Assembly: GCF_902713615.1 (NCBI RefSeq)
Contig: NC_052162.1
Location: 127,124,653-127,188,652 of the forward strand
From: Scyliorhinus canicula
Taxonomy: Eukaryota
DNA length: 64,000 nt
Direction of reading: 5' to 3'
The position numbers and the translations under genes are program-made. Shown piece after piece: positions 7,063-63,478 of this stretch. The notes beneath the pieces are model-generated. The model was not told the origin of the DNA and did not search any database. It was given only the letters and a program-made list of their open reading frames with translations. Within the stretch, counting starts at the first letter, position 1. Every line of letters starts with the position of its first letter.

Positions 7063-7664
7063 CTGGATTCACTTCCTTTCCCTTCAGTTGCAGCAAGTCC
7101 CCAATGTCCCCCCAGAATGAGGAAAGAAATGGAAAGGGGGAAACATTGATTTCCTCCCAGATGTTGCAGAGGAGGAAGTTTTAGTCCAACCTCCGCATTG
7201 TGATGTCACAAGGGAGCCCTGCCAAGATCAGCCAATAGGAATTACTGATCCGTGGTGACGTCACCGGGCTCCATTGCGCAGAACCCGGGAGCCCCGGCCC
7301 CACCCATTGGTCCCCGCCCACCTCCTCCAGACAAGGTTTCCAGGGCTCCGGCCAGAGCGAGAAGCCGCTCAGTGACCTCCCCCTTCTCCTGGACTGCGCA
7401 TGTGCGGCTGAGAGCTCGCCCTCTGACCTTCCGGCTGAGGTGTTGACCAATGCGAAGATTGGAGGACCGGAAGTACTCTCTTGGTTCAGATCAAACCGCG
7501 GACTTCCGGTGTCTGAAATTGTCGATTCACACAGACTGAAACCTCCTCCTGTCTCCAACATCTGTGAGTAAAACACTTTCTTTTCTCCCCCTTTCCATTT
7601 CTTTTCTCATTCTCACCTTCAATTGGTCACTTGCAGCGACTGAAGGGAAAGGAAGTGAATCCAG
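7063..7664. promoter_or_regulatory. Bidirectional promoter cassette P1 with inverted arms; + exon-1 donor at 7564
   Basis: Arms 7063-7180 and 7539-7664 are diverged reverse complements; core has TGACGTCA, two CCAAT, TGCGCATG, CCGGAAG/CTTCCGG; donor ct|gtgagt. Confidence 0.8.
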
Positions 7665-7871
7665 GGAGGGTGCAGACTCTGCAAAGCTTGGCCCAGGTCT
7701 CTCTCTCTCTCTTAAAGACATTGACATCCTTTGCTCCCTCAGCTTGACACATTTATTTGTCTGGCTAAAAGGATGGTCTCTTTCCCAATGTTCACAATTA
7801 AGGGGCTGCTTTCCCCAGGAGATGGCTGACATTTAAGGGGATAGGAAAATAATATTTAAAAATTCATACAT

Positions 7872-8095
7872 GGGGGCAGCACGGTGGCGCAGTGTCTTAG
7901 CACTGCTGCCTCACGGCGCTGAGGTCCCAGGTTCGATCCCAGCTCTGGGTCACTGTCCGTGTGGAGTTTGCACATTCTCCCTGTGTTTGCGTGGGTTTCG
8001 CCGCCACAAGCCATAGATGTGGAAGTTAGGTAGATTGGCCATGGTAAATTGCACCTTAATTGGAAAAACTTAATTGTGTGCACCAAATTTATAAA
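7872..8095 (+). mobile_element. HE1/V-SINE-like SINE
   Basis: gggcagcacggtggcgcagtg...ggttcgatccc...gggtcactgtccgtgtggagtttgcacattctcc. Confidence 0.8.
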
Positions 8096-8234
8096 AAGAA
8101 AGGGGAAAAAAATAATTCAAAGGATGCAGTTGTTGCTCGTTTAGTCAGTGTTTATTTCGTATTCCTCCAATTCAGAGGGCATTTAAGAGTCAATCACTGT
8201 ATGGGTCGAGTTGAGAAACACCAAGGGGGCGAAA

Positions 8235-9220
8235 TACATTTGTCTGGGTGGTACACAGACCCTCAAACTGTATTGGTAACGTTGGGAATAGCATTAGACA
8301 GGAAATCAGAGATGGATGTGATAAAGGAACATCTGTGATTATGGGTGACTTTAAGCTGCAGATAGATTGGGTGAGTCAAATTAGTCACTCTAAAGAGAAA
8401 GAATTTCTGGAGTGTACTCGGGATGGTTTTCTGGACCAATATGGTGAGGAACCAACAAGGAAACAGCCCAACTTGGACTGGGTGTTGTGCAATGAGAAAG
8501 GCTTTGTTGGCAATCTTGTTATGAGAGAACCTTTGGGGATGTGTTGGGAGGGGAGATCAGTTGGGGAGCATGGGGTGAGGCACTGCAAAGGGTAAACGGG
8601 ACCTCCTCTTGTGCAAGGATGAGCCTGATACAGCTCTAGGTGGTGGGTGCAAATGACTTGGGCGAGAATGAGTGGGTTTTTTCAGGAGGTAGCAGATGGG
8701 TGTGGGCGGGGGCCAGCGAATCACGCGCACATGTTTTGCGGTTGTGTATAATTGGGAAGATTCTGGGCGCGAGTGTTTGCGGCCTTAGCCGGGATAGTGG
8801 AGGAGGAGGTGGACCCGGACCCTTTGGTGGCGATATTTGGGGTTTCAGAGAAGCCGGAGCTCATGGAGAGGAGGAAGGCCAATGTTGTGGCCTTCGCCTC
8901 CCTGATTTATGGTGGTGGATTTTACTGGAGTGGCGGTTGGCATTGCCACTGGGGGTAGCGGCTTAGTTGGGTGACCTGTACGACTTCCTGCGGTTGGAGA
9001 AGATAACGTATGAGTTAAGGGGCTCTGCAGAGGGGTTTGAGAAAAGCTGGGGGATGTTTGTGACTGTGTTTGAGGGGCTGTTCGTCGCAGGGTGGGTGTG
9101 GGTGGAAAAGGGAAACAATTTGTACAAACTGTCAAGTTGATAGCTGGGAAGTATGTTTCCCGGGCTGTTTATTTGCTGTCACCTGTTTTAATACATGTTT
9201 GTAATAAAATACATTTTAAA
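8235..9220 (+). mobile_element. CR1 endonuclease fragment fused (about 8540) to L1/Tx1 3' fragment
   Basis: VIMGDF...LDQYGEEPTRKQPNLDWVLCNE, then PLVAIFGVSEKP...VAFASLI and an A-rich tail. Confidence 0.7.
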
Positions 9221-9229
9221 AAAACATTT

Positions 9230-9650
9230 CTATGTATTGCTGTGGATCTGGGGTCACATGTAGGCCGGACCAGGTAAGGACGGCAGATTTCCTTCCCTAA
9301 ATGACATGAACGAACCAGTTGGGTTTTTACGACAATCGGCAATGGTTCCATGGTCATCATCAGACTTTTAATTCCAGATTTTTACTGAATTCAAATTGCA
9401 CCATCTGCTGTGGTGGGATTTGAACCCTGCTCCCCAGAGCATTTACAAAGCATCTGCTGTGACAAAGAGTCATCCAGACTGGAAACGTTAGCTCCCTTCT
9501 CTCCTCACAGATATTGTCAGACCTGCTGCGATTGTCCAGTATTTTCTGTTTTTGTTTCAGATTCCAGCATCTGCAGTAATTTGCTGTTCTCCCCAGAACA
9601 TTATCCTGGATCTCTGGATTACTGATCCTGTGATAATACCACTGCACCAT
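9230..9650 (-). mobile_element. tRNA-headed SINE (SacSINE/DeuSINE-like) interrupted by a Penelope fragment; copies about 22065-22486 and 55195-55534
   Basis: Reverse complement has A/B-box-like head (tggtgcagtgg; gggttcaaatccc). Confidence 0.55.
9444..9588 (+). mobile_element. Penelope-like 3' terminal fragment with degenerate hammerhead; 14-bp TSD
   Basis: TSD ctccccagagcatt/ctccccagaacatt; gct-GTGACAA-a-gagtc-atcca-gactg-GAAA-cgtt-agc. Confidence 0.65.
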
Positions 9651-10544: not shown

Positions 10545-11351
10545 ATGGAGAAACCGTGGAAATGTGGGGACTGTGGGAAGGGATTCAGTGCCCCATCACG
10601 ACTGGAAGCTCATCGACGCAGTCACACTGGGGAGAGGCCGTTCACCTGCTCTCGGTGTGGGAAGGGATTCACTCACTTATTCACCCTGCAGAAACACCAG
10701 CGAGTTCACACTGGGGAGAAGCCGTTCACCTGCTCTCAGTGTGAGAAGGGTTTCACTCAGTTATCCAGCCTGCGGTCGCACCAGCAAGTTCACACTGGGG
10801 AGAGGCCGTTCACCTGCTCAGTGTGTGGGACAGGATTCACTCGGTTGTGTAACTTGCAGTCACACCAGCGAGTCCACACTGGGGAGAGGCCATTCACCTG
10901 CTCAGTGTGTGGGACAGGATTCACTCGGTTGTCCAACCTGCGGGTACACCAGCGAGTCCACACCGGGGAGAGGCCGTTCACCTGCTCCCAGTGCGGGAAG
11001 GGATTCAGTGAGTTATCCAACCTGCGGGTCCACGAGCGAGTTCACACTGGGGAGAGGCCATTCACCTGCTCGGACTGTGGGAGGAGATTCTCCAAATCAT
11101 CCAACATGGTGTCACACCAACGACTTCACACCAGGGAGAGGCCGTTCACCTGCTCTGAGTGTGGGAAGGGATTCAGCGATTCATCCTCCCGGCTGTCACA
11201 CCAGCGAATTCACAGTAAGGAGAGCCATTCACCATCTCCAAGTATGGGCTGGGATTCACTCGATCAACCTACCTGCTCAAACACCAGCGAATTTACACTG
11301 GGGAGAGGCCATTCACCTGCTCCGAGTTGGGGAAGGGATTCTCTCGGTTAA
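10545..11351 (+). CDS. C2H2 zinc-finger protein B, 8 intact fingers, frameshifted tail
   Basis: accATGG MEKPWKC; 1-nt deletion (gagagccattc) after finger 8; acceptor ends 10290. Confidence 0.75.
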
Positions 11352-12187: not shown

Positions 12188-13130
12188 GGCCGTTTATCTG
12201 CTGTGTGTGTGGGAAGCGTTTTCCCTGTTATCCACCCTGCGCAGCTACCAGCGAGTTCACGAGTGATGACAGGGGTTGGACTCGGCTGTTATTGCTGCTG
12301 TTAATCTCACCCAGGACTGAACCATGTTCATTCTGACACTTGGTGAAGTGGGAAGGTCAGAGGGTTTCTCTCTGCTGGACTCAGTGGGGGGGGGGGGGGC
12401 TGAGGAGAGTTACGAGAACGGCACCAGGATTGAGGGACTTCAGTTAGTTGGAGTTACTGGAGCAGCTGAAATTGTTCTCTTCAGACCAGAGAGTCATTCG
12501 GGAAGGGAAGAAGGCCATTCAGCCCATTGACTTCATGCTGGCTCCTGTGGAGCAAACCGGTCAGTCCCATTTCCCTCAAGTGCCCATCCAACTTTCATTT
12601 TGAAATAGTTCAGGGTGTCTGCTTCCACCATCCTCACGGGCAGCGAGTTCCAGGTCATTACCACTCACTGTGCACCTCCCCCCACACTCACATCTTTCTA
12701 TTTTCATTCTTTCATGGGATGTGGTGTTTCTGGCTTGGGTCCAGCATTTGTTCTCCATCCCTAATTGCTGCTTTAGAAGGTGGTGGGTGAGGCACCTTCT
12801 TGAACTGCTGAAGTCTGTGTGGTGTCGGTAACAGCCCAGTAACACCCCCAGTGCTGTCAGGGAGGGAGTTCCAGGATTTGGACCCAGCGACAGTGGAGAA
12901 CAATGATATATATCTTCCTCGTACTAAAGCTTAAATGTGTGTCCCCCTTGTCCTTCTCCCATCATCTAATGGGAGCAGCTTTTCTTTGTCTTGTTCACCT
13001 ATATCCAATCACCCCTCAACCTCCTTTGCTCCAAAGTGAACAATCCCGGCTTCTCCATATGAGCCTTGTGGTTAAAATCCCTCCTCCAGAGAACCACTCG
13101 AAAAGTTACAGCCCAGAAAGAGGGCATTGT

Positions 13131-13320
13131 AGTGGTTTAGCACAGGGCTAAATCGCTGGCTTTAAAAGCAGACCAAGGCAGGCCAGCAGCACATTTCATT
13201 TCCCGTACCAGCCTCCCCGAACAGGCGCCGGAATGTGGCGACGAGGGGCTTTTCACAGTCACTTCATTTGAAGCCTACTTGTGACACTAAGTGATTTTCG
13301 TTTTCTTTTTCATTTCATTC
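13131..13320 (+). mobile_element. About 190-bp tRNA SINE with (TTTCA)n tail (copies 19537-19738, 48238-48410, 59622-59775, 60861-61052 on -)
   Basis: ggtttagcacagggctaaatcgctggc...gaagcctacttgtgac...ttcatttca recurs at these sites. Confidence 0.75.
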
Positions 13321-13404
13321 GTTCCATCTTGTCCATACCAGCCCGAGGAGACCCAGGTGCCCTTTCTAATCCCTGCTTCCTGCATCCGGCCCATAGCCCT
13401 GCCC

Positions 13405-13830
13405 TGGATCTCAGACAACAATGAGTCAGTACAGGAGGGAGATAGAGAACTTAGTAGCATGGAGCAACATCAACAATCTCTCCCTCAATGTCAGCAAAAC
13501 TAAGGAGCTGGTCATCAACTTCAGGAAGGGAAGTGCCGTCCACACCCCTGTCTGCATCAATGGTGACGAGGTGGAGATGTTTGACAGCTTCAAATTCCTA
13601 GGTGTGCAAATCATCAACAATCTGTCCTCGTCCATGCACATCAACGTCACAACAAATAAAACACAACAGCGCACATACTTCCTCACAAAAGTAAGGAAAC
13701 GCGGCCTGTCCACACTGACCCTCACCAATTTGACTCTAACCAATTTTTTCAGATGCACCTCTGGCTGCATCACAGCCTGGCATTGCAACTGCTCGGCCCA
13801 AGACCATGAGAAACGACAGAGAATCTTGTA
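13405..13830 (+). mobile_element. Rex1/Babar-like LINE RT fragment (copies about 48505-48915, 59870-60282)
   Basis: ENLVAWSNINNLSLNVSKTKELVINFRK...FKFLGVQIINNLS. Confidence 0.75.
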
Positions 13831-13950
13831 ATCAGCTGTGCACAACGGTCACGTTTAACATTATCAAGCATGTCATGTTGTGTAAGCACAGTTGCATTTC
13901 AACATATGATGCAGTGACATTTCTATGTAAATGTATAACAGTTCCAGAGT

Positions 13951-14254
13951 AAGGGGGATGTGTTGATATGCCTGTGCACAGTTCTGTACATAGTTAGATA
14001 TGTGACTTCCAACCAGCTGGTGGTGATAGAGATCCATCATGTGACTCGAGACACCCGCCAGTTGGCAGTGAGGCGGACAAGAAGATGGTCACACTTAGAG
14101 TAGCTGCAGGAGAATTCACTGAATTTATTAGTCATTGTCTGAATTGTAGTTTGTTAGTTTGCTTTCCACGTGTTTGTAGGTAAATCATCTTTCCAGTGAA
14201 AGAACCAGATGTTCTCTGTCCATCGTTACCACGGCCAGAACACAGAACAGAATA
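13951..14254 (+). mobile_element. Polypurine tract plus about 300-bp Gypsy-like 3' LTR (LTR copies 49081-49378, 60448-60745)
   Basis: aagggggatg precedes TGTTG; the other two copies end CAACA. Confidence 0.6.
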
Positions 14255-14669
14255 ACTTTTAGTTTGAGATTTGGTTTTCTTTTAAATGTAAGATAAATGG
14301 AAATTCTGGATTTGATAAAAACACCCTCAGGGAATTCCCAATCACAAGGTGTGGCCCATGTTGACAGAAGAAGTCAAAGCTGGAAGGGTAAGATCTGTAA
14401 AAGGGCAGCTGGGCTATTTTAGCTGGAGACCTGGAGACATCGAGTCTGACAATTACTGTCCTGTCTTTGTTACAGAGGTGAATTCTTCATGCAGACCTCA
14501 GTGTCGAATGGTTTGGTTTTGAAGCTAAAAGTCGATTAATATGAACATCTGTTGGACATCCCAATGAGTCTGTGTGACCATGGGGATCAGTGATTCAGGG
14601 TGGAGCCTTGGTTGGAATTCTAGGTGTTTCTCGCAGAAAGCAGGCAGTCTGCAGTTAGCGTGGAAGCAG

Positions 14670-15190
14670 TCAGCTGTGGGAGCAGGAGCTGTGAACCAGC
14701 TGTGGGAGCAGGAGCTGTGAACCAGCTGTGGGAGCAGGAGCTGTGTACCAGCTGTGGGAGCAGGAGCTGTGAACCAGCTGTGGGAGCAGGAGCTGTGAAC
14801 CAGCTGTGGGAGCAGGAGCTGTGAACCAGCTGTGGGAGCAGGAGCTGTGAACCAGCTGTGGGACCAGGGAGCCAGCTGTGGGAGCAGGAGCTGGGAACCA
14901 GCTGTGGGAGCAGGAGCTGTGGGAGCAGGAGCAGTGAACCGGCTGCAAGAGCAGGAGCAGTGAACCGGCTGCCGGAGCAGGAGCAGTGAACCGGCTGCCG
15001 GAGCAGGAGCAGTGAACCGGCTGCCGGAGCAGGAGCAGGGAACCGGCTGCGGGAGCAGGAGCAGGGAACCGACGGCGGGAGCAGGAGCAGGGAACCTGGC
15101 TGCGGGAGCAGGAGCTGGGAACCGGCTGCGGGAGCAGGAGCTGTGAACCAGCTGCGGGAGCAGGAGCTGTGAACCAGCTGTGGGAGCAGG
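14670..15190. repeat. 26-bp minisatellite (TGTGGGAGCAGGAGCTGTGAACCAGC)n, about 20 units
   Basis: Direct tandem repeat with variant units. Confidence 0.95.
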
Positions 15191-15294
15191 AATCTGGAAG
15201 GCCATGAGGAACCGGGGGTGTTCCTAATGTTTAAATCCCTCAGGTGGAAGGGAGTGAAGCTCGCGCTTGGACTGAAGAGTCAACAATTTATCTG

Positions 15295-15570
15295 AATGGT
15301 ACCATTTGTTTCAGCCAGGGTCACTACTTAAAGCTCTTTCCTCAGTCAGTGCACTGGAACACTCCCACTTGATTGTCTGTTTGTCTTGATGCTGTTTCTT
15401 CACATTGATGCTTAATATCATTGGAAACAGACAGAATAGCCAAACATTTATCCTTCTAGATTCAAAGGCCAATGATATGTAGGTTCTTAGAATCTGACAT
15501 TCACTTTTTGATATGACGTTTGGTGTGAAATTTCTGTCTGTAAATCCTCTCGTTCCGATAGCCGATAAAA
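15295..15570 (-). pseudogene. Truncated 5' part of - strand partner ZNF exon (copies about 50820-51090, 61980-62250)
   Basis: Reverse complement aligns to the + exon leader (ggcctttgaatctagaagga; agtgttccagtgcactgactg); acceptor ttttacag mutated to ttttatcg. Confidence 0.75.
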
Positions 15571-15882
15571 GGAGTTTACATAAATCATCACTGTCAGTAC
15601 ATAATAGAAATTCAGAACAGACAATTTAGTTTCTATGAAACATTCCTTCCTCTCATTCCCCAAAAGCTCTAAATCTCCACCCCACACACTCTCCCTCCAT
15701 TCTCACTCTGCTGTATCTAATATTCACCCTCCCAATTCTCCTGAAGGTGCTGATTCAGGCTGACTGACAGATCCCTGCTCACTGCTTCCTGTCCTGGACA
15801 CAGAGACCTGAAAATCTTCCTGCAGGCTGCCAGACGGATGTATGTCTACAATACTGGACAGAAAATGTGTGTAATATATAGA

Positions 15883-16507
15883 CTGGATTCACTTCCTTTC
15901 CCTTCAGTTGCTGCAAGTCCCCAATGCCCCCCCCCCAGAATGAGGAAAGAAATGGAAAGGGGGAAACATTGATTTCCTCCCAGATGTTGCAGAGGAGGAA
16001 TTTTTCGTCTTACTTCCGCATTGTGACGTCACAAGAAAACCCTGCCGGGATCAGCTAATAGGAATCACTCTGCCCGTGGTGACGTCAGCGGGCTCCAGTG
16101 CGCATGCCCGGCGCGGACACGGGAGCCCCGCCCCCACCCATTGTTCCCCACCCACCTCCTCCAGACAGGGTTTCCAGGCCACCGGCAGACGGCTCGGGCC
16201 AGAGCGAGAAGCCGCTCAGCGACCTCCCCCTTCCCCGGGACTGCGCATGTGGGGCTGAAAGCCCGACCTCTGACCTTCGGCTGAGTTGTTGACCAATGGG
16301 AAGATTGGGGAACCGGAATGACTCAGGTCCTCCAGCCAATCAGAGCGCGCGCTTTGTGGGACGACAGAGCTTCACACCGACTGAACCCTCCTCCTCTCCA
16401 ACATCTGTGAGTAAAACACTTTCTTTTCTCCCCCTTTCCATTTCTTTTCTCATTCTCACCTTCAATTGGTCACTTGCAGCAACTGAAGGGAAAGGAAGTG
16501 AATCCAG
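15883..16507. promoter_or_regulatory. Bidirectional promoter cassette P2; donor at 16407
   Basis: Same arms; TGTGACGTCACA, TGCGCATG, CCAAT motifs; right part of the core is divergent. Confidence 0.78.
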
Positions 16508-16819: not shown

Positions 16820-19410
16820 TAGGAGTGGTGCACAGGCCCTCAAACTGCATCAGTAACATTAGGAATAGCATTAGAGAGGGAAATCAGAGATGGATGTGAT
16901 AAAGGAATATCTGTGATTAAATTTGACTTTAATCTCCATATAGATTGGTTGAGTCAAAGTAGTCACAGTAGAATAGAGGAGGAATTTCTGGAGTGTAAAT
17001 GGGATGGTTTTCTGGACCACAAGTGTTGAGGAACAAACAAGGGAACAGGCCATCTTGGTCTGGGTGTTGTTCAATGAGAAAGGATTCGTTGGCAATCTCA
17101 ATGTGAGAGAATCTTTGGGGATGAGTGACCAGAAGATGATAGAATTCTTTATCAAGGGGGATCGTGAGGTTGTTGATTTTGTGTCCAGGGTACTGAATCA
17201 ATAAAGGTAACTATGATGAGATGAGACATGAGTTGGTATGATGGATTGGGAAATACTACTGAAAGGAAGAACTGTGGACAGGCAATGGAGACATTCAAGG
17301 AATGAATACGTGAACTCCAAAAGTTGTTCATTCCTATTTGACGCAATAGGAGAAAGGGAACTGTGGCCAAACCATGGCTTACAAGTGAAATTAGAGATTG
17401 TATTAGATTCAAAGAAGAGGCACACAAATTAGCAAGCAAAAACAATAGACCTGAGGATTGGGAACAGTTTAAAATTCAGCAAAGTCAGGCCAAGGGATTG
17501 GTTGAGAAGGGGAAAATACATTATGAAAGCAAGCTAGCGAGGAACATAGTAACTGACTAAAAGTTTCTCTAGGTTGTAAAGAGAAAAGGTTTGATAAAAA
17601 CTAATGTAGTAGACCAATTCGGTCAGTCAGTAGTAGAGAAATGGTTTGGGGGAAATTAATGGGATTGAGGGTAAATAAATCTCCAGGTCCTAATAATCTT
17701 CATCCCAGAGTACTTAGGCAACTGGCCCGAGAAGAAGTAAATCCATTGGTGGTCACTTTCCAACATTCTTTGGAGAGACTGGTTAGGTTGGGTTTGTTTT
17801 GTCTGGAGCAGAGAAGGCTGAGGGGGGACCTGATTGAGGTGTATAAAATTATGAGGGACGTAGATAGGGTGGGTAGGAAGATAGTTTTCCCCTTTGTGGA
17901 GGGGTCAATAACCAGGGGCATAGATTTAATGTAATGGGCAGGAGGCATAGATTTGATGGAATGGGCAGGTGGTTTAGAGGATATGTGAGGATAAGCTTTT
18001 TCACCCAGAGGGTGGTGGGAATCTAGAACTCGCTGCCTGAAAGGGTGGTAGGGGCGGGAACCCTCACAACATTTCAGAAGTATTTAGATGAGCCCTTGAA
18101 ATGCCAATGCATGGGGGAACAGATCGAAGACGGGACATGGGCTGATGCCCTGGAGAGAGTTAATTCTTCCTCCTCGTGTGCGCGGCTTAGCCTCATTCAA
18201 TTCAAGGTGCTGCACCGGGCCCACATGACTGGGACGAGGATGGGTAGGTTCTTTGGGGGTGAGGACAGGTGTGTCAGGTGCTCGGGAAGTCCAGCGAACC
18301 ATGCCCATATGTTCTGGGCATGCCCGGCACTGGAGGAGTTCTGGAAGGGGGTGGCGAGGACGGTGTCGAGGGTGGTGGGATCCAGGGTCAAGCCAGGATG
18401 GGGACTCGCGATTTTTGGGATTGGGGTGGAGCCGGGAGTGCAGGAGGCGAAAGAGGCCGGTGTGCTGGCCTTTGCGTCCCTAGTAGCCCAGCGAAGGATC
18501 TTGCTACAATGGAAGGATGCGAGGCCCCTAAGCGTGGAGACCTGGATCAATGACATGGCGGGTTTCATTAAGCTAGAGAAGGTCAAATTCACCCTGAGAG
18601 GATCGGTACAAGGGTTCTTTAAACGGTGGCAACCTTTCCTCGACTTTCTGGCTCAACGATAGGGTACGGGGACAGCAGCAGCAGCAACCCGGGGAGGGAA
18701 AAGGGGAGGGAAAAGGGGGGGGGGCGACAATGACTATGTTTGTTTATTTAATTTTAATATTTTTTAAGTTCTTTTGTTGTTCATTAGGGTTGGGGGGGTG
18801 GGGGGATGTGATACATGCGCCGATACGGTCTGGGGGTGTCACAGTTATTGTGGGTTATTTTGTTGCATTTTATTGTTTGTCGTTATGTTTTATATTTTCT
18901 GTAAAAAATTCCAATAAAAATTATATTAAAAAAAAGAAATGCCAATGCATACAAGGCCACAGGACCAAGTCCTGGAAAATGGGATTAGAATAGTTAGCTG
19001 CTTGATGGTTGGCGCGGACCCGATGGGCCGAAGGGTCCCTTTCCATGCTGTAAGACTCTATGACTGTGGAATAGTTCCCACAGATTGGAGGTGAGCTAAT
19101 ATAACTCTGCTATTCAAAAAGGAAGGGAGAGAGAAAACAGGGAACTTACACCAGTGAGCCTCACGTCGGGAACAGGGAAGTTGCTGGGGTCCATCATCCA
19201 GGATTTCACAGCACAGCATTTGGAAAGCAGTGGTGCAATCAGACAAAGTCAGCATGGATTTACAAAAGGGAAATCATGCTTGACAGATCTCCAGGAATTC
19301 TTTGAAGATGTAACTCGTAGAGTTGACCAGGGAGAACTGGTGGATGTGATTTATTTAGACTTTCAGAAGATTTTGACAAGGTCTCTCATGGCAGATTATC
19401 ATGTAAAGAT
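16820..19410 (+). mobile_element. Decayed CR1 ORF2 pieces in the intron of gene C (interrupted at 18113-18935)
   Basis: NKSPGPNNLHPRVLRQLA, LEQRRLRGDLIEVYKI, QSQHGFTKGKSCLTDL, VDVIYLDFQK. Confidence 0.8.
18113..18935 (+). mobile_element. 5'-truncated L1/Tx1 LINE with poly(A) and 15-bp TSD
   Basis: TSD gaaatgccaatgcat both sides; open frame with CVRC...HMFWACP; AATAAA and A tail. Confidence 0.9.
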
Positions 19411-19759
19411 TTTTTTGAAAACATTTTATTTAGGTATTTTTAATTTTATAATAACAGTAACAACAACAGTTAACAATGCAGATCCAAATATAAACATCGT
19501 GCATAAATCATCTCCATCCCTAACAAGCCCCTACAGGGGCTGATTTAGCACAGGGCTAAATCGCCGGCTTTGAGAGCCGACCAAAGCAGGCCAGCAGCAC
19601 GGTTCAATTCCCGTATCAGCCTCCCCGAACAGGCGCCGGAATGTGGCGACTCGGGGCTTTTCACAGTAACTTCATTGAAGCCTACTTGTGACAATAAGCG
19701 ATTTTCATTTCATTTTCATTTCATTTCATTTCATTTCAAGTCCCATCTACCCTATACAG

Positions 19760-21370
19760 ACAATAGGGTGTGTGTGGGCAGGCAAGAACCCGCGGGTCAG
19801 GGAGGCTTTTGTAGAGCGGGGGAGGGGAGGTTGGCGTTGCCAAATATAATGAATTACTACTGGGCGGTGAACATTGCCATGGTTAGGGAATGGGTAGTCG
19901 GGGGAGGGGTCAGTGTGAGGGCGGATGGAGGCGGCTTCATACAGGGGTACGAGCTGAAGGGCGTTGTTAACAACGCCTTTACCATTCTCCGGCTCGACAC
20001 TCTGTGAGCCCAGTGGTGGTGTTGGTTTGAAGGTGTGGGGGCAGTGGAGGCAGCATTTGGGACTGGAGGCTGCCTCGGTGTAGGCACCGATCTGTGACAA
20101 CCACAGGTTTGTGCCGGGGGGAGTGGGGGGGGATGCTGTTTGCAAGGTTTCAGGGATGGCGGCAGGCAGGGATTGAGCGATTTGGCAATCTGTTTATCGG
20201 GGGCAGATTCCCAAAAACTGGAGGACCGGGAGCTGGGGGACCGGGAGCTGGAGGACAGGCAGCTGGAGGACCGGGAGCTGGGGGACCGGGAGCTGGAGGA
20301 CAGGCAGCTGGAGGACCGGGAGCTGGGGGACCGGGAGCTGGAGGCCCGGGAGCTGAGGGACCAGGACCGGGAGCTTGATCATCGGGAGCTGGGGGACCGG
20401 GAGCTGGGGGACTGGGAGATGGGGGATCGGGAGCTGGAGGACAGACAGCTGGAGGACAGACAGCTGGAGGACAGACAGCTGGAGGACCGGGAGCTGGGGG
20501 ACTGGGAGCTGGGGGCCCGGGAGCCGGGGGCCCAGGAGCCGGGGGCCCGGGGCCCGGGAGCCGGGGGCCCGGGAGCCGGGGGACTGGGAGGAAGTGTATG
20601 AGCTGCCCAGGGGGAACAGATTTAGGTACTTGCAGGTCTGGGATTTAGTGAGGAGGGAGGTGCTGTCTTTTCCTGGGCTACCGCCCCTGGGTTGCAGGAT
20701 AAGGTCCTGTCGAAGGAGGAGAAAGGGGGAGGGGCAGGTGTCCGAGGTCTTAAGGAGTTGATAGACTGGGAGGGGGACCCTGGTGGGGGATAAAAGAATA
20801 AGTGGGAGGAGGAGCTGGGTGGGGAGGTGGAGGTTGGGACGCGGGCTGAGGCCTTGCGGAGGGTGAATGCGTCCTCGTGGTGTGTGAGGCTAAGCCTCAT
20901 TCATGGAGCACAGAGACGGTGGCACGGATGAGTGGGTTTTTTGAGGGAGTAGTGGGTTGGTGAGTGCGGAAGGCTCGGGAATCATGTCCGAAGCTGAAGG
21001 GGTTGCGGCAGGGGTTTGTGGACCCAATGTCCGAGGTGCTGGGGGTGAAGGTGGCCCTGAGTCCAGAGGTAGCCATATTCGGGGTATGGGAAGACCCAGG
21101 GGGGCGTGAGAGGCCGGTGTCTTGGCCTTTGCCTCCCTGATAGCCTGGAGGCCGATCTTGCTCAGGTGGAGGGACTCGGAGCCTCCGAATGCCGGGGTGT
21201 GGGTGAGCGACCTGACGAAATTCCTGAGGCTGGAGAAGGTCAAGCTCATCCTGAAGGGGTCGGTTGATGGGTTCGCTCGGAGATGGATGCCGTTCATTGA
21301 CTTCTTTAAGGAGGATTGAGGGGTCAGCAAAGCGCTGGGGGTGGTGGAAGGGGGGTTAAAATGGGGAAGG
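19760..21370 (+). mobile_element. Decayed L1/Tx1 ORF2 C-terminal region containing a 15-bp minisatellite
   Basis: LALPNIMNYYWAVN, ELPRGNRFRYLQV, LAFASLIAWRPILLRW. Confidence 0.8.
20217..20590. repeat. 15-bp G-rich minisatellite (GGGAGCTGGRGGACC)n, about 25 units
   Basis: Direct tandem repeat; reads DRELG/DRQLE in one frame. Confidence 0.92.
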
Positions 21371-21384
21371 CAGGATGGGGGAAG

Positions 21385-23556: not shown

Positions 23557-24579
23557 ATGGAGAAACCGTGGAAATGTGGGGACTGTGGGAAGGGATTCAG
23601 AGTACCATCACGACTGGAAGCTCATCGACGCATTCACACTGGGGAGAGGCCCTTCACCTGCTCCCGGTGTGGGAAGGGATTCGCTCAATTATCCAACCTG
23701 TGGATACACGAGCGCGTTCACACTGGGGAGCGACCATTCACCTGCTCTCAGTGTGGGAATGGATTTGCTCTGTTATCCAGCCTGCGGACACACCAGCGAG
23801 TTCACACTGGGGAGAGGCCGTTCACCTGCTCTAAGTGTGAGAAGGGATTCGCTCACTTATCCAGCCTGCGGACACACCAGCGAGTTCACACTGGGGAGAA
23901 GCCATTCACCTGCTCTCAGTGTGGGAAGGGATTCGCTCACTTATCCAGTCTGCGGAAACACCAGCGCGTTCACACTGGGGAGAAGCCATTCACCTGCTCT
24001 CACTGTGAGAAGGGATTCGCTCACTTATCCAGCCTGCAGACACACCAGCGAGTTCACACTGGGGAGAAGCCATTCACCTGCTCTCAGTGTGGGAAGGGAT
24101 TCACTCGGTTATACAGCCTGAAGAAACATCAGCGAATTCACACTGGGGAGAGACCGTTCACCTGCTCTCAGTGTGAGAAGGGATTCATTCGGTTATCCAA
24201 CCTGCTGACACACCAGCGAGTTCACACTGAGGCGAAGCCATTCACCTGCTCTCAGTGTGAGAAGGGATTCATTCGGTTATCCAACCTGCAGACACACCAG
24301 CGAGTTCACAATGGGGAGAAACCGTTCACCTGCTCTCAGTGTGAGAAGGGATTCGCTCACTTATCCAACCTGCGGACACACCAGCGAGTTCACACTGGGG
24401 AGAAGCCGTTCATCTGCTCTTTGTGTGGGAAGAGATTCACTCAGTCATCTCATCTGCAGGCACACCAGCGAGTTCACACTGGGGAGAGTCCGTTCACCTG
24501 CTCCGAGTGTGGGAAAGGATTCACTCGGTCAATCTTCCTGCTCAAACACCAGCAGGTTCACATCGGGAAGAGGCTGTGA
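23557..24579 (+). CDS. C2H2 zinc-finger protein C, 340 aa, 12 fingers
   Basis: accATGG MEKPWKC; intact frame to GKRL*; acceptor ends 23190. Confidence 0.88.
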   Translation: MEKPWKCGDCGKGFRVPSRLEAHRRIHTGERPFTCSRCGKGFAQLSNLWIHERVHTGERPFTCSQCGNGFALLSSLRTHQRVHTGERPFTCSKCEKGFAHLSSLRTHQRVHTGEKPFTCSQCGKGFAHLSSLRKHQRVHTGEKPFTCSHCEKGFAHLSSLQTHQRVHTGEKPFTCSQCGKGFTRLYSLKKHQRIHTGERPFTCSQCEKGFIRLSNLLTHQRVHTEAKPFTCSQCEKGFIRLSNLQTHQRVHNGEKPFTCSQCEKGFAHLSNLRTHQRVHTGEKPFICSLCGKRFTQSSHLQAHQRVHTGESPFTCSECGKGFTRSIFLLKHQQVHIGKRL

Positions 24580-30500: not shown

Positions 30501-30544
30501 TTTAATTCCCCCATAACAACTACAGCACAATCGAATCTCTGTCA

Positions 30545-33990: not shown

Positions 33991-34083
<93 letters not shown>

Positions 34084-43506: not shown

Positions 43507-43974
43507 CTGGAATAACTTTCTTTCCCTTCAGTTGCTGCAAGCCCCCAATGTCCCCCCAGATGTTGCAGAGGAGGAAGTTTTCATCCAACTTCCGGATTGT
43601 GACGTCACAAGGGAGTATTGCCGGGATCAGCCAATAGGAATCACTGCTCCGTGGTGACGTCTCCGGGTTCCAGTGCGCAGGTTCGGCGCGGACACGTGAA
43701 CGCCTCCCGCACCCATTGTTCCAGAGGTCGCCCCCTGACCTTCCGGCTGAGGTATTGACCAATGGGAAGGTTAGAGGACCGGAAGGACTGTCTCCGTTCA
43801 GATCAAACCGCGGACTTCCGGTGTCTGCAAATGGCGCTTCACACAGACTGAAACCTCCTCCTGTCTCCAGCATCTGTGAGTAAAACACTTTCTTTTCTCC
43901 CCCTTCCATTTCTTTTCTCATTCTCACCTTGAATTGGGGACTTGCAGCAGCTGAAGAGAAAGGAAGTGAATCCA
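43507..43974. promoter_or_regulatory. Bidirectional promoter cassette P4 (internal deletions); donor at 43876
   Basis: Keeps CRE, CCAAT, ETS and AAATGGCG; lacks about 100 bp including the NRF1-like site. Confidence 0.75.
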
Positions 43975-45037
43975 GGGAGGGTGCAGACTCTGCAAAGCTT
44001 GGCTCAGGTCTCTCTCGCTCTTATAGCACAATTGCTTCACAGCTTCAGGGTCCCAGGTTCGATTCCCGGCCCCGGGTCACTGTCCGTGTGGATATTGCAC
44101 ATTCTCCCCGTGTGTGCGTGGGTCCCACCCGCCTTTTGAAATACTTTGCCTCCCCTTCCGTCATTTAGATTGTCTGTCAGTTCCAGATTTCTCACATCCT
44201 CCTCCCACATAGGGTTCAATATATTGCTCATTATCAGTTCAGTTATATACACAGGGGACAGTTTAGCTCAGATGGCTGGACAGTTGGTTCGAGATGCAGA
44301 GCAATGCCAACAGCGTGGGTTCAATTCCTGGACTCGCTGAGGTTATTCATGAAGGCCCACTTTCTCAACCTTGCCCCTCGCCTGAGGTGTGGTGATGGTC
44401 AGATTAAATCACCACCAGGCAGCTCCCCCCGCAAAGGGGAAAGCAGACTATGGCCATCTGGGACTATGGCCACTTTGCTACAGATACAAATGGAGAAAGG
44501 TTTTAAGGTCTCTCTATCTGGGACATGAAACAGTGACCATGGATCTGTTGCTCAAATTAAACCGTACCTGAACAAGAATTGGGAGGGTATATATTGCGTG
44601 GAGTGAGCGTTGGATGACTTTTGGGAAGGAGAGAGGATCGAATGTTCATAGAAACTAGAATTGTCTGTTCTGAATGTCTATCCTGTACTGACAGTGATGA
44701 TCCTTTTACAGGATCTCAGAACGTGAGGATTTACAGATAGAAATCTCAAAGCAAACTTCACGTCAACATCCGACAGCGTCGCTCAATTCATCAAGACTGG
44801 AATATCATCGGCCTTTAAATCTGTCTGCTTCAAACATTGTACTGGAAAAGCACCGAGACACACACGCCCGAGTGGGAGAGTTCCAGAGCACTGACTGTGA
44901 AAAGAGCTTTAACCAGTTACACAGCCTGAAAAAAACATCACACCATTCACAGCGGGGAGAGACTGTACACGTGTTCTGTGTGTGGACGAGGCATCAACTG
45001 GGCGGTGAACCTGGAGAGACAAAAGGACACCCGCACT

Positions 45038-45934
45038 ATGGAGAAACCCTGGAAATGCGGAGACTGTGGGAAGGGATACAGTGCCCCATCACGACTGGAA
45101 GCTCATCGACGCAGTCACACTGGGGAGAGGCCGTTCACCTGCTCCCGGTGTAGGAAAGGATTCACTCACTTATTCACCCTGCAGAAACACCAGCGAGTTC
45201 ACACTGGGGAGAGGCCGTTCACCTGCTCTCAATGTGAGAAGGGATTCACTCAGTCATCTCACCTGCGGACACACCAGCGAGTTCACACTGGGGAGAGGCC
45301 ATTCACCTGCTCTCAGTGTGAGAAGGGATTCACTCACTCATCCAGCCTGCGGGCACACCAGCGGGTTCACACTGGGGAGAGGCCGTTCACCTGCTCTCGG
45401 TGTGGGAAGGGATTCACTCACTCATCGACCCTGCTGAACCACCAGCGATTTCACACTGGGGAGAGGCCGTTCACCTGCTCTCAGTGTGAGAAGGGATTCA
45501 CTCAATTATCTGACCTGCAGATACACCAGCGAGTTCACACGGGGGAGAGACCGTTCACCTGCTCTGTGTGTGGGAAGGAATTCACTCTGTTGTGTAACCT
45601 GCAGAAACATCAGCGAGTCCACACCGGGGAGAGGCCCTTCACCTGCTCTCAGTGTGGGACAGGATTTGCTCGGTTGTCCAACCTGCAGACACACCAGCGA
45701 GTCCACACTGGGGAGAGGCCGTTCACGTGCTCTGTGTGTGAGTCAGGATTCACTCGGTTGTCCAACCTGCAGAGACACCAGCGAGTCCACACCGGAGAGA
45801 GGCCCTTCACCTGCTCGCAGTGTGGGAAGGGATTCAGCGCGTTATCCAACCTCCGGGTTCACCAGCGAGTTCACACCAGTGAAGAGTTTCAGCGATTCAT
45901 CCTCCCGGCTGCCACACAGGCGCACTCACAGTAA
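45038..45934 (+). CDS. C2H2 zinc-finger protein E, 10 intact fingers, frameshifting deletion near the C-terminus
   Basis: actATGG MEKPWKC; last finger lies in another frame ending 46031; acceptor ends 44711. Confidence 0.75.
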
Positions 45935-49791: not shown

Positions 49792-50716
49792 GCCAGCTGT
49801 GGGAGGGAGCTGTGAACCAGCTGTGGGAGGGAGCTGTGAACCAGCTGCGGGCGCAGGAGCAGTGACCCAGCTGTGGGAGCAGGAGCAGTGAGCCAGCTGT
49901 GGGAGCAGGAGCTGTGAGCCAGCTGTGGGAGCAGGAGCTGTGAACCAGCTGTGGGAGCAGGAGCTGGGAACCAGCTGTGGGAGCAGGAGCTGTGAAGCAG
50001 CTGTGGGAGCAGGAGCTGGGAACCAGCTGTGGGAGCAGGAGCTGTGAACCAGCTGTGGGAGCAGGAGCTGGGAACCAGCTGTGGGACCCGGAGCTGTGAA
50101 CCAGCTGTGGGAGCAGGAGCTGGGAACCAGCTGTGGGAGCAGGAGCAGTAAGCCAGCTGTGGGAGCAGGAGCAGTGAGCCAGCTGTGGGAGCAGGAGCAG
50201 TGACCCAGCTGTGGGAGCAGGAGCTGTGAACCAGCTGTGGGAGCAGGAGCTGTGAACCAGCTGTGGGAGCAGGAGCAGTGAACCAGCTGTGGGAGCAGGA
50301 GCAGTGAACCAGCTGTGGGAGCAGGAGCAGTGAACCAGCTGTGGGAGCAGGAGCTGGGAACCAGCTGTGGGAGCAGGAGCTGTGAACCAGCTGTGGGACC
50401 CAGGAGCTGTGAACCAGCTGTGGGAGCAGGAGCTGTGAACCAGCTGTGGGAGCAGGAGCTGGGAACCAGCTGTGGGAGCAGGAGCTGTGAACCAGCTGTG
50501 GGAGCAGGAGCTGTGAACCAGCTGCGGGCGCAGGAGCAGTGAACCAGCTGTGGGAGCAGGAGCTGGGAACCAGCTGTGGGAGCAGGAGCTGGGAACCAGC
50601 TGTGGGAGCAGGAGCTGTGAACCAGCTGTGGGACCAGGAGCTGTGAACCAGCTGTGGGAGCAGGAGCTGGGAACCAGCTGTGGGACCAGGAGCTGTGAAC
50701 CAGCTGTGGGAGCAGG
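49792..50716. repeat. 26-bp minisatellite, about 35 units
   Basis: Same unit as 14670-15190. Confidence 0.95.
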
Positions 50717-51398
50717 AACCTAGAGGGCCATGAGGAATCAGGGGTGTTCCTAATATTTAAATCCCTCAGGAGGAAGGGAGTGAAGCTCACGCTTGGACTG
50801 AGGAATCAACAATTTATCTGAATGGTATCATTTTTTTCAGTCAGGGTATCGACTTAAAACTCTTTCCTCAGTCAGTGCACTGGAACACTACCACTCGATT
50901 GTCTGTCTCGATGCTGTTCCTTCACATTGATGCTTAATATCATTGGAAACAGACAGAATAGCCAAACATTTATCCTTCTAGATTCAAAGGCCAATGGTAT
51001 GTCGGTTCTCAGAATCTGATATTGAATTTTTGATATGTTTGGTGTGAGATTTCTGTCTGTACGCTCCTTCTGATAGACGATAAAAGGAGTTTACTATAAA
51101 TCATCACTGTCAGTACATAATAGAAATTTAGAACAGACAATTTAGTTTCTATAGAACATTTCTTCCTATTATTCCCTAAAAGCTGTAAATGTCCATCCCA
51201 CACACTCTCCCTCCATTCTCACCCTCCTGTATCTAATATTCACCCTCCCAATTCTCCTGAAGGTGCTGATTCAGGCTGATTGACAGATCCATGCTCACTG
51301 CTTCCTGTCCTGAACACAGAGACCTGAAAATCTTCCTGCAGGCTGCCAGACAGATGTATGTCTACATTACTGGACAGAGAATGTGTGTAATATACAGA

Positions 51399-52022
51399 CT
51401 GGATTCACTTCCTTTCCCTTCAGTTGCTGCAAGTCCCCAATGTCCCCCCAGAATGAGGAAAGAAATGGAAAGGGGGAGACATTGATTTCCTCCCAGATGT
51501 TGCAGAGGAGGAAGTTTTAGTCAAACTTCCGGATTGTGACGTCACAGGGGAGCCTTGCCAGGATCAGCCAATAGGAATCACTGTGCTCCGTGGTGACGTC
51601 TCCGGGTTCCATTGCGCAGGCTCAGCGCGGACACAGGAGCCACGCCCCCACACATTGTTCCCCGCCCACCTCCTCCAGACAAGGTTTCCAGGCAACCGGC
51701 TGACGGCTCCGGCCAGAGCGAGAAGCCGCTCAGTGACCTTCCCCTTCCCCGGGACTGCGCATGTGCTGGTGTGTGCCCGCCCCTGACCTTCCGGCTGAGG
51801 TATTGACCAATGGGAACGTTGGAGGACCGGAAGGACTCTTCGTTCAGATCAAAATTCGGACTTCCGGTGTCTGAAAATGGCGCTTCACACAGACTGAAAC
51901 CTCCTCCTGTCTCCTACATCTGTGAGTAAAACACTTTCTTTTCTCCCCCTTTCCATTTCTTTTCTCATTCTCACCTTCAATTGGTCACTTGCAGCAACTG
52001 AAGGGAAAGGAAGTGAATCCAG
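51399..52022. promoter_or_regulatory. Bidirectional promoter cassette P5; donor at 51922
   Basis: Full motif set and inverted arms. Confidence 0.82.
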
Positions 52023-56576: not shown

Positions 56577-57347
56577 CTGGAGAAACCGTGGAAATGTGGG
56601 GACTGTGGGAAGGGATTCATAGCCCCATCACGACTGGAAGCTCATCGACGCATTCACACTGGGGAGAGGCCGTTCACCTGCTCTCAGTGTGAGAAGGGAT
56701 TCGCTCACTTATCCAGCCTGCATAGACACCAGCGAGTTCACACTGGAGAGAGGCCGTTCACTTGCTCTGTGTGTGAGAAGGGATTCGCTCACTTATCCAC
56801 CATGCGGACACACCAGCGAGCTCACACTGGGGAGAAGCCATTCACCTGCTCTCAGTGTGGGAAGGGATTCACTCGGTTATCCAGTCTGCGGAAACATCAG
56901 CGAGTTCACACTGTGGAGAAGCCGTTCACCTGCTCTCAGTGTGAGAAGGAATTCGCTCACTTATCCAGCCTGCGGAGACACCAGCGAGTTCACACTGGAG
57001 AGAGGCCGTTCACTTGCTCTGTGTGTGAGAAGGGATTCGCTCACTTATCCACCATGCGGACACACCAGCGAGCTCACACTGGGGAGAAGCCATTCACCTG
57101 CTCTCAGTGTGGGAAGGGATTCACTCGGTTATCCAGTCTGCGGAAACATCAGCGAGTTCACACTGTGGAGAAGCCGTTCACCTGCTCTCAGTGTGAGAAG
57201 GAATTCACTCACTTATCCAACCTGCGGACACACCAGCGAGTTCACACTGGGGAGAGTCCGTTCACCTGCTCCGAGTGTGGGAAAGGATTCACTCGGTCAA
57301 TCTTCCTGCTCAAACACCAGCAAGTTCACATCGGGAAGAGGCTGTGA
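56577..57347 (+). CDS. C2H2 zinc-finger protein F, 9 fingers; start ATG mutated to CTG
   Basis: accCTGG LEKPWKC; frame intact to GKRL*; acceptor ends 56223. May be a young pseudogene. Confidence 0.6.
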   Translation: MEKPWKCGDCGKGFIAPSRLEAHRRIHTGERPFTCSQCEKGFAHLSSLHRHQRVHTGERPFTCSVCEKGFAHLSTMRTHQRAHTGEKPFTCSQCGKGFTRLSSLRKHQRVHTVEKPFTCSQCEKEFAHLSSLRRHQRVHTGERPFTCSVCEKGFAHLSTMRTHQRAHTGEKPFTCSQCGKGFTRLSSLRKHQRVHTVEKPFTCSQCEKEFTHLSNLRTHQRVHTGESPFTCSECGKGFTRSIFLLKHQQVHIGKRL

Positions 57348-61100: not shown

Positions 61101-61365
61101 GCAGCTGGGCTATTTTAGCCGGAGACCTGGAGACATCGGGTCTGACAATTACTGCCCTGTCTTTGTTACAGAGGTGAATTCTTCATGCAGACCTCAGGGT
61201 CGAAAGGTTTGGTTTTGAAGCTAAAAGTCGATTAATTTGTACATCTGTTGGACATCATAACAAGTCTGTGTTACCATGGGGATCAGTGATTCAGGGTGGA
61301 GCCTTGGTTGAAATTCTGGGTGTTTCTCACAGAAAGCAGGCAGTCTGCAGTTAGCGTGGAAGCAG

Positions 61366-61880
61366 CCAGCTGTGGGAGCAGGAGCTGTGAACCAGCTGTG
61401 GGAGCAGGAGCTGGGAACCAGCTGGGGGAGCAGGAGCTGGGAACCAGCTGTGGGAGCAGGAGCTGTGAACCAGCTGTGGGAGCAGGAGCGGGGAACCAGC
61501 TGTGGGAGCAGGAGCTGTGAACCAGCTGTGGGAGCAGGAGCTGTGGGAGCAGGAGCTGTGGGAGCAGGAGCTGTGAACCAGCTGTGGGTCCAGGAGCTGT
61601 GACCCAGCTGTGGGAGCAGGAGCTGTGTACCAGCTGTGGGAGCAGGAGCTGTGAACCAGCTGTGGGAGCAGGAGCTGTGAGCCAGCTGTGGGAGCAGGAG
61701 CTGTGAACCAGCTGTGGGAGCAGGAGCTGTGAACCAGCTGTGGGAGCAGGAGCTGTGAACCAGCTGTGGGAGCAGGAGCTGTGAACCGGCTGTGGGAGCA
61801 GGAGCTGTGGACCGGCTGTGGGAGCAGGAGCTGTGAACCGGCTGTGGGAGCAGGAGCTGTGAATCGGCTGTGGGAGCAGG
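61366..61880. repeat. 26-bp minisatellite, about 20 units
   Basis: Same unit as 14670-15190. Confidence 0.95.
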
Positions 61881-62420
61881 AACCTAGAGGGCCATGAGGA
61901 ATCAGGGGTGTTCCTAATGTTTAAATCCCTCAGGAGGAAGGGAGTGAAGCTCACGCTTGGACTGAGGAGTCAACAATTTATCTGAATGGTATCATTTTTT
62001 TCAGCCAAGGTTACTACTTAAAGCTCTTTCCTCAGTCAGTGCACTGGATCACCCCCACTCGATTGTCTGTTTGTCTTGATGCTGTTCCTTCATATTGATG
62101 CTTAATATCATTGGAAACAGACAGAATAGCCAAACATTTATCCTTCTAGATTCAAAGGCCAATGGTATGTAGGTTCTCAGAATCTGACATTGAATTTTTG
62201 ATATGTTTGGTGTGAGATTTCTGTCTGTACTCTCCTTCTGATAGCCGATAAAAGGAGTTTACTATAAATCATCACATCAGTACATAATAGAAATTTAGAA
62301 CAGACAATTTAGTTTCTATAGAACATTTCTTCCTCTCATTCCCCAAAAGCTCTAAATCTCCATCCCACACACTCTCCCTCCATTCTCACTCTGCTCTATC
62401 TAATATTCACCCTCCCAATT

Positions 62421-62703
62421 CCCGGCTGGGTCACTGTCTGTGTGGAGTCTGCACGTCCTCCCCCTGTGTGCGTGGGTTTCCTCCGGGTGCTCCGGTTTCC
62501 TCCCACAGTCCAAAGATGTGCGGGTTAGGTGGATTGGCCATGCTAAATTGCCCGTAGTGTCCTAATAAAAAGTAAGGTTAAGGGGGGGTTGTTGGGTTAC
62601 GGGTATAGGGTGGATACGTAGGTTTGAGTAGGGTGATCATGGCTCGGCACAACATTGAGGGCCGAAGGGCCTGTTCTGTACTGTACTGTTCTATGTTCTA
62701 TGT
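62421..62703 (+). mobile_element. 5'-truncated HE1-like SINE with CR1-type tail
   Basis: Flanked by aatt; absent in the five other left flanks; tail matches 1200-1250. Confidence 0.85.
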
Positions 62704-62852
62704 AATTCTCCTGAAGGTGCTGATTCAGGCTGATTGACAAATCCCTGCTCACTGCTTCCTGTCCTGGACACAGAGACCTGAAAATCTTCCTGCAGGCTGC
62801 CAGATAGATGTCTGCCTACATGACTTGTCAGAAAATGTGTGTAATATACAGA

Positions 62853-63478
62853 CTGGATTCACTTCCTTTCCCTTCAGTTGCTGCAAGTCCCCAATGTCCC
62901 CCCAGAATGAGGAAAGAAATGGAAAGGGGGAAACATTGATTCCCTCCCAGATGTTGCAGAGGAGGAAGTTTTAGTCAAACTTCCGGATTGTGACGTCACA
63001 GGGGAGCCTTGCCAGGATCAGCCAATAGGAATCACTGTGCTCCGTGGTGACGTCTCCGGGTTCCATTGCGCAGGCTCAACGCGGACACGGGAGCCCCGCC
63101 CCCACCCATTGTTCCCCGCCCACCTCCTCCAGACAAGGTTTCCAGGCAACCGGCTGACGGCTCCGGCCAGAGCGAGAAGCCGCTCAGTGACCTCCCCCTT
63201 GCCCGGGACTGCGGGTGTGCTGATGAGTGCCCGCCCCTGACCTTCCGGCTGAGGTATTGACCAATGGGAAGATTGGAGGACCGGAAGGACTCTCTTCATT
63301 CAGATCAAACCGCGGACTTCCGGTGTCTGAAAATGGCGCTTCACACAGACTGAAACCTCCTCCTGTCTCCAACATCTGTGAGTAAAACACTTTCTTTTCT
63401 CCCCCTTTCCATTTATTTTCTCATTCTCACCTTCAATTGGTCACTTGCAGCAAGTGAAGGGAAAGGAAGTGAATCCAG
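62853..63478. promoter_or_regulatory. Bidirectional promoter cassette P6; donor at 63378
   Basis: CRE, CCAAT, ETS and YY1 motifs and inverted arms; NRF1-like site mutated. Confidence 0.82.

Follow-up and report, generated by a model that had tools for sequence, protein, structure and literature searches.

The subject of this analysis is a stretch of 64,000 nt of contig NC_052162.1 from Scyliorhinus canicula (termed the window; all positions given are window coordinates), in which six CpG-rich promoter units, designated P1 to P6, lie among C2H2 zinc finger (ZNF) genes. Each repeat probably consists of one live-looking plus-strand ZNF gene and the dead mirror image of such a gene, the two being arranged around one asymmetric promoter as a fossil inverted duplication. 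An earlier, sequence-only reading of the same DNA had proposed instead that two paralogous ZNF genes share each promoter. This is contradicted by the state of the minus-strand partner, which lacks the GT of its splice donor in all six units, lacks the AG of its acceptor in three, is interrupted in two and is truncated in one.

The difference between the two sides is clearest at the splice sites. In all six right arms the end of exon 1 is followed by GTGAGT, while the exact mirrored donor position in the left arms is GG (6/6). The acceptor, a pyrimidine tract followed by ACAG, is kept in 7/7 right-hand copies. Among the left copies, those of P2, P5, and P6 have ATCG at the acceptor position, those of P3 and P4 keep the AG with foreign sequence immediately after it, and that of P1 ends before it is reached. 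The coding regions differ in the same manner. The minus-strand finger arrays (n = 2) contain 2–3 recognizable fingers and 7–11 stop codons in every frame, whereas all of the arrays with open fingers, of which there are six, are on the plus strand, with 8–13 fingers per array and 7–12 of these held by the open frames. Pfam identifies zf-C2H2 and zf-H2C2_2 in the longest open frames, with E-values down to 1e-100, and no KRAB, SCAN, or BTB effector domain in the same frames, the introns not having been searched exhaustively for small exons. Hence the window contains what defines a tandem C2H2 ZNF cluster, namely several paralogous multi-finger genes in one orientation, but it does not contain two functional head-to-head coding partners, as the minus partner is disabled in every unit.

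RNA data are available for the P3 unit, in which the earlier proposal is best represented and where three sets of contigs from different studies and one stranded run of raw reads were aligned to positions 30000–35999. A GT..AG joint from 33211 to 33790/33791 is present in all four runs (X1, X4, X12, and X20), and this is the predicted splice from exon 1 to the plus-strand ZNF exon, which uses the donor in the right arm. In the stranded run (X20), the depth over the ZNF exon is 22–69 on one strand versus ∼1 on the other, which sets the polarity of the library, and that over exon 1 is 2.0 in the RNA sense versus 0.14 in the opposite sense, while the left arm has a depth of 0.2–0.44 on either strand. 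A mirror-splice joint is not among the joints listed for 30000–35999. These results show that the family uses the right-arm donor and indicate that its stable spliced output runs in the plus direction. A live minus partner, as previously envisaged, is therefore not supported in the window, since there is no open minus finger array and, among the joints listed, both the stranded RNA and the contigs contain only the plus-strand splice.

The promoter units themselves are well defined. A 36-nt arm motif has 11 matches at ≤3 mismatches in the window (shuffles expect 0), and the one arm missing from this count, on the left of P4 (43507), still aligns clearly despite four mismatches and an internal deletion. 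A BLAST comparison of the window with its own reverse strand gives six inverted arm pairs, P1 (7063–7664), P2 (15883–16507), P3 (32689–33312), P4 (43507–43975), P5 (51399–52022), and P6 (62853–63478), with arms of 123–131 bp that are 78–86% complementary around each center. The six CpG-rich cores between inverted arms that had been described from sequence are thus confirmed by both motif count and reverse-strand search. The cores are 347–389 bp in length, shorter in the deleted P4, with a GC content of 0.60–0.62 and a ratio of observed to expected CpG of 0.69–0.78 versus 0.44 for the whole window, and the arms are nearly free of CpG. In P1, the left arm (7063–7186, minus strand) has the mirrored end of exon 1 at 7159 followed by GG in place of GT, and it is separated by the core (7187–7533, no strand assigned) from the right arm (7534–7664, plus strand), in which exon 1 ends at 7563 and the GT donor is at 7564. 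The same arrangement of left arm with lost donor, core, and right arm is seen in P2 (15883–15999 with GG after 15982, 16000–16388, and 16389–16507 with exon 1 ending at 16406 and GT at 16407), in P3 (32689–32812 with GG after 32785, 32813–33181, and 33182–33312 with exon 1 ending at 33211), and in P5 (51399–51522 with GG after 51495, 51523–51891, and 51892–52022 with exon 1 ending at 51921 and GT at 51922). P4 has internal deletions, with the left arm at its start (GG after 43558) and the right arm at 43841–43975 (GT at 43876), and P6 is made up of a left arm at 62853–62976 (GG after 62949), a core at 62977–63347, and a right arm at 63348–63478 (GT at 63378), the acceptor of its plus-strand gene being at 63926.

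The cores, including that of P3, show no self-complementarity beyond that of shuffles when examined for a hidden palindrome, and the island represents one asymmetric promoter and not a pair of mirrored or fused ones. Since the core lacks self-complementarity and the homology of the arms does not begin until ∼20 nt ahead of the donor, the mirror copy is without a recognizable promoter of its own. By simple pattern counts, putative cAMP response element (CRE), CCAAT, NRF1-like, ETS, and GC-box motifs occur in most of the six units, and a YY1-like motif is exact in 3/6, such that the motif set of bidirectional promoters claimed earlier is for the most part present. The mirrored ends of exon 1 are ∼320–430 bp apart in one CpG island, which is within the <1-kb spacing by which bidirectional promoters are recognized. 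A regular-expression scan located a U1-type site ∼200 nt from the island center on the sense side of 6/6 units and none at the mirrored antisense place in the six units. AATAAA or ATTAAA is not present within 1 kb on the antisense side of any unit (0/6).

The plus-strand genes consist of the CpG-island promoter of ∼350 bp, a short non-coding exon 1 with its donor in the inner part of the right arm, one intron of 0.5–6.8 kb depending on its content of insertions, and one large ZNF exon. The ZNF open reading frames (ORFs), all on the plus strand, are located at 10545–11351 in the P1 gene (acceptor AG ending at 10290, 8 fingers), 23557–24579 in the P2 gene (AG ending at 23190, open frame from 23206, 12 fingers), 34108–35238 in the P3 gene (AG ending at 33789, 12 fingers, Pfam zf-C2H2 only), 45038–45934 in the P4 gene (AG ending at 44711, 10 fingers), and, counted from the first ATG, 56802–57347 in the P5 gene (AG ending at 56223, open finger frame from 56331). 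A seventh plus-strand gene (ORF at 4735–5337, AG ending at 4371) has its promoter outside the window. The first ATG of the plus-strand genes lies inside the finger region, and the sequence upstream of it (33790–34107 and 4372–4737) consists of fossil fingers with stop codons, which suggests that the portion of the exon ahead of the fingers serves as a long 5′ untranslated region. An exact-protein look-up of four of the plus-strand ORFs found no record, and a protein homology search with a 376-aa ZNF ORF was saturated by generic ZNF matches and provided no gene models.

To the left of each promoter, inverted homology is found beyond the arms in 6/6 units, covering the distal intron, the acceptor, and the pre-finger ZNF exon at 67–71% identity (sensitive settings). 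The claim that inverted homology resumes in the distal part of the gene is thereby substantiated, except that the mirrored fingers themselves are present in only 2/6 units, to the left of P3 and P4. The mirrored pre-finger exon is ∼260 bp, and the mirror match extends into it without a break at the acceptor at P2 (15824–15293), P5 (51340–50819), and P6 (62349–61983), while at P3 and P4 it stops at the acceptor and restarts in decayed fingers (31271–30550 and 42731–41768, respectively) and at P1 it ends at 6783. All of the relics are on the minus strand. That of P1 is the mirror of the distal intron (6783–7062), cut at 6783 by a deletion of ∼2.7 kb; the junction of this deletion relative to 12844–15600 is at 6744–6783, and it took the spacer and most of the relic. 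The relic of P2 (15293–15882) contains the end of the intron, the acceptor with AG changed to CG at 15563, and the pre-finger exon, and the acceptor has likewise become CG in the relics of P5 (50819–51398, at 51078) and P6 (61983–62421, at 62246). The P6 relic also has an insertion of ∼280 bp (62422–62703) that is not in P5 or P2. In the P3 relic, the intron (32369–32688) retains its AG at 32369 with repeat sequence next to it, and the finger array (30550–31271) has three recognizable fingers and 10–11 stops in each frame. The P4 relic has an intron at 43185–43506 and fingers at 41768–42731, of which two are recognizable, with 7–10 stops per frame. The repeat directly behind the relic acceptor of P3 (31272–32368, no strand assigned, with many loose ends of RNA contigs at 32368) and that of P4 (42732–43184) have the identical junction, which indicates that the insertion is older than the duplication of these two units. 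The left sides of P2, P5, and P6 have a 26-bp minisatellite in place of the mirrored fingers, at 14671–15191, 49793–50717 (35.7 copies), and, beyond the left relic, 61366–61881, respectively (no strand assigned). These minisatellites have 20–36 copies and their minus strands are stop-free, giving ORFs of 223–380 aa. In Pfam, a 226-aa ORF of this type had no match and the 380-aa ORF had one low-complexity RINGv hit without a qualifying stretch, and by our own calculation the chance expectation of a stop-free 26-bp unit is ∼0.3.

The history of these structures can be read from the divergence of their parts. A tree calculated from the twelve arms separates a left clade from a right one, the support being 100/100. 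Arm identity is ∼80% between the left (L) and right (R) clades and mostly 97.5–98.5% within them, the exceptions being the deleted or divergent L4, R4, and R2 at 89–95%. The Jukes–Cantor (JC) distance is ∼0.40 for the distal mirror, 0.23 for the arms, and 0.06–0.10 for the copies of the array. Separate clades together with a distance of 0.40 versus 0.06–0.10 point to one inverted duplication that took place well before the local amplification, in accord with the earlier proposal of a single old event, and the mirror is present in every period of the array. As the GG is common to all six left arms, the donor of the mirror copy was lost before amplification. Substitutions specific to one arm of a unit are absent from the opposite arm of that unit, which gives no indication of recent conversion between the arms. 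The period of the array is 7.5–16.8 kb and the block identities are mosaic. Two characters, each of single origin, bear on exchange between the halves. The left type is either B (L1, L3, and L4) or A (L2, L5, and L6), and at one and the same site behind the right arm an insertion resembling a short interspersed nuclear element (SINE) is present in P3, P4, and P6 and absent from P1, P2, and P5. All four combinations of left type and SINE state occur, which requires at least one exchange within or next to the promoter unit. The idea that the two-gene module is what duplicates therefore stands in part, in that the mirror is carried in every period, which is trivially true of tandem arrays, and fails in part, in that its halves have been reshuffled at the promoter. 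In P1, the deletion removed nearly the whole left relic and left the promoter and the structure of the plus-strand gene unchanged, which argues that the left partner is dispensable cargo and not half of a functional pair. An artifact of assembly is unlikely, as the copies differ by 4–12% and by distinct insertions, and RNA contigs of independent studies match the units. The SINE-like element (33340–33492, ∼43990–44053, and 63500–63628) contains a motif like the T-arm of a tRNA, followed in P3 by a long poly-C run; ARAGORN makes no call on it, and its class is assigned from sequence only.

The window lies inside a tandem array of effector-less C2H2 ZNF genes, all on the plus strand, and a probable course of events accounts for the present arrangement. 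A single inverted duplication, several-fold older than the local amplification, would have copied the gene outward from a point ∼20 nt short of the end of exon 1. The mirror copy would have been disabled before the array grew, by the change of its donor from GT to GG, and would have decayed further by loss of the acceptor, insertion of a repeat, substitution of a minisatellite for the fingers, and deletion, the dead mirror then being copied along as a passenger of the tandem array. What appears to be a two-gene bidirectional cassette would accordingly be, in the window, one gene and one fossil, and genome-wide counts of head-to-head ZNF pairs in this species need checks of donor, acceptor, and frame on both sides. 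The array would also provide a dated example of a promoter that turned one-directional through the loss of a mirrored 5′ splice site before a large expansion of its family.

A fossil duplication does not explain why both arms show higher conservation than either the core or the flanks. Among the non-CpG columns of five units, 4–5% are variable in the arms, versus 12–14% in the immediate flanks (Fisher p = 0.0009) and 24% in the core (p = 3e-11), and the left arm compared with the left flank alone gives p = 0.015. The L and R consensus sequences are identical over the outer 36 nt of the arms and agree at 27/28 positions of a 28-nt pyrimidine block, while the mirrored sequence farther out has an identity of 68–76%. 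The chance of an identical run of the 36-nt length is ∼0.0005–0.03, varying with the background identity that is assumed. Folding of both arms as RNA on both strands gave z values of 0.32 to −1.95, such that no structured RNA or hairpin precursor is indicated, and no Rfam family was detected anywhere in the window, which favors cis-elements that act at the level of DNA. The evidence leans, by a modest degree, toward arm blocks that persist as putative orientation-independent cis-elements flanking the island, and their conservation on the dead side is a testable hint of such promoter-flanking elements. The blocks may resemble ETS/IRF-type sites. A rather unlikely extension of this, and a speculative one, is that the 36-nt and 28-nt blocks are selected, orientation-symmetric “book-end” cis-elements that bracket the CpG core in a cassette amplified over many Mb, to which ETS/IRF-type factors or ZNF proteins could bind, possibly with a long antisense transcript passing through the relic; if true, this would be a family-specific regulatory module that is retained even beside a dead gene. 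An intronic block of ∼60 nt just upstream of the acceptor (33690–33789 and its mirrors) is near-invariant in 12/12 L and R copies, and, being kept even in the dead left copies, it is a further candidate for a constrained element.

Several points weigh against the reading of one live gene beside a fossil and have to be considered together with the alternatives. All of the reads over 33948–33988 differ from the window and come from paralogs that are at least 95% identical, so that the RNA evidence applies to the family and not to the locus. The depth over exon 1 amounts to just a few reads, and there are 26 weaker joints besides those listed. Taken alone, the comparison of the R arm with the R flank falls short of significance (p = 0.12), and the arms could owe their conservation to a low mutability of sequence free of CpG or to conversion among the copies, and not to selection. 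In its fullest form, the latter possibility is that arm conservation is neutral and without any regulatory role, the arms being slowly mutating, CpG-free, pyrimidine- or purine-rich sequence or the subject of short-tract conversion. This is a possibility of real but minor weight, consistent with the near absence of CpG from the arms, with the exchanges of the array at the promoter, where all four combinations are present, and with the non-significant result for the R arm. However, CpG columns had already been left out of the comparison, and conversion between copies would homogenize the core as well, whereas the core varies more than any other part. Moreover, a block that is the same in L and R despite a JC distance of ∼0.4 elsewhere needs either exchange between L and R or selection, and copy-specific arm variants are not common to L and R of one unit. 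The remaining point concerns transcription. Oligo-dT RNA-seq misses unstable antisense RNA, such that bidirectional initiation is compatible with the data, and the CpG island may still start short unstable antisense RNA. It is somewhat doubtful that the promoter fires in both directions with a long RNA, unspliced or non-coding, as the minus product, which would pass through the left arm and the relic, and in type-A units also through the stop-free minisatellite, and might have a role of its own, although such RNA would be compatible with a fossil mirror gene. CpG-island promoters generally initiate divergently, the antisense side lacks AATAAA and ATTAAA within 1 kb in 6/6 units, contigs from the RNA libraries cover the left arm at low depth, and conservation is high in the left arm and in the flank next to it. 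Yet stranded reads over the left arm number about one or fewer per bin versus a clear sense signal on exon 1, the contig coverage may represent trace DNA of a multi-copy family, and the minisatellite ORFs have no meaningful match in Pfam and can be stop-free by chance (∼0.3).

The two alternatives that would give the mirror an entirely different meaning are much less probable. That a live head-to-head ZNF pair is co-transcribed from one bidirectional promoter, with the two-gene cassette as the functional unit that is amplified, agrees with the mirrored gene anatomy in 6/6 units and with an island whose motif set is typical of bidirectional promoters. It is very improbable in view of the GG at the left donor (6/6), the acceptor that is lost (3/6) or abutted by a repeat (2/6) or removed by truncation (1/6), the absence of an open minus finger array and of a mirror splice among the listed RNA joints, and a core that is not mirrored, and the data on splice sites and reading frames have already largely refuted it in the window. 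Inverted termini ∼600 bp apart and in many repeats could also suggest a dispersed transposon or miniature inverted-repeat transposable element that happens to sit at ZNF promoters and has the arms as its terminal inverted repeats. The probability of this is close to nil, as the arms run on into the mirrored intron, acceptor, and exon of a ZNF gene, there is no direct repeat at their outer edges, the arm motif is found nowhere in the window outside the six units, and the right arm contains the donor that is used in RNA. Within the window, the mirrored gene anatomy and the lack of a flanking direct repeat rule out such an element.

A single live gene with a fossil mirror can be compared with several known systems. 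Bidirectional CpG-island promoters of vertebrate head-to-head genes have a set of ETS/GABP, NRF1, YY1, NF-Y/CCAAT, and CRE motifs. The units resemble them in having an island without a TATA box, the same motif set, and exon-1 ends only ∼320–430 bp from each other, but here donor, acceptor, and open frame work on one side only and stable spliced RNA comes from one side. Lineage-specific tandem C2H2 ZNF clusters include the KRAB-ZNF clusters of human chromosome 19 and the arrays of zebrafish chromosome 4. The window is similar to these in its paralogs of one orientation, fingers in one exon, 84-bp periodicity, and copies that are 88–96% alike, and its mosaic structure suggests unequal exchange, but no KRAB or other effector is detected by Pfam and each period has a mirror-image pseudogene. 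Inverted duplication around one promoter has also given rise to head-to-head paralogs such as COL4A1/COL4A2 and histone H2A/H2B. The origin proposed here, an inverted copy back-to-back with its parent, would be the same, except that one partner died before amplification; moreover, with the breakpoint inside exon 1, the mirror copy would have arrived without a promoter.

Ampliconic palindromes on primate sex chromosomes are kept identical by arm-to-arm gene conversion, and they too have inverted arms around a short spacer in an amplified gene family. In contrast, the arms in the window are ∼80% identical and not >99%, and recent arm-to-arm conversion is not seen. With L–R identity at this level and unit-specific substitutions that are not common to L and R, the units do not behave as gene-converting palindromes. 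In the U1–polyadenylation signal axis, a 5′ splice site downstream of the transcription start site favors productive elongation. The strong U1-type site on the sense side (6/6) and the destruction of the mirrored site (6/6) are as this would predict, but the antisense side shows no enrichment of poly(A) signals, with none within 1 kb in 6/6 units. Searches of the literature found no description of such a ZNF promoter cassette.

The window contains a few further elements. Upstream of the first ZNF exon, at 287–1162, is a fragment of the reverse transcriptase of a long interspersed nuclear element (Pfam RVT_1). The long intron of the P2 gene contains a weak zf-RVT match (18045–18659), a tRNA-Ser-like sequence (19537–19625), and a G-rich 15-bp minisatellite (20218–20551).

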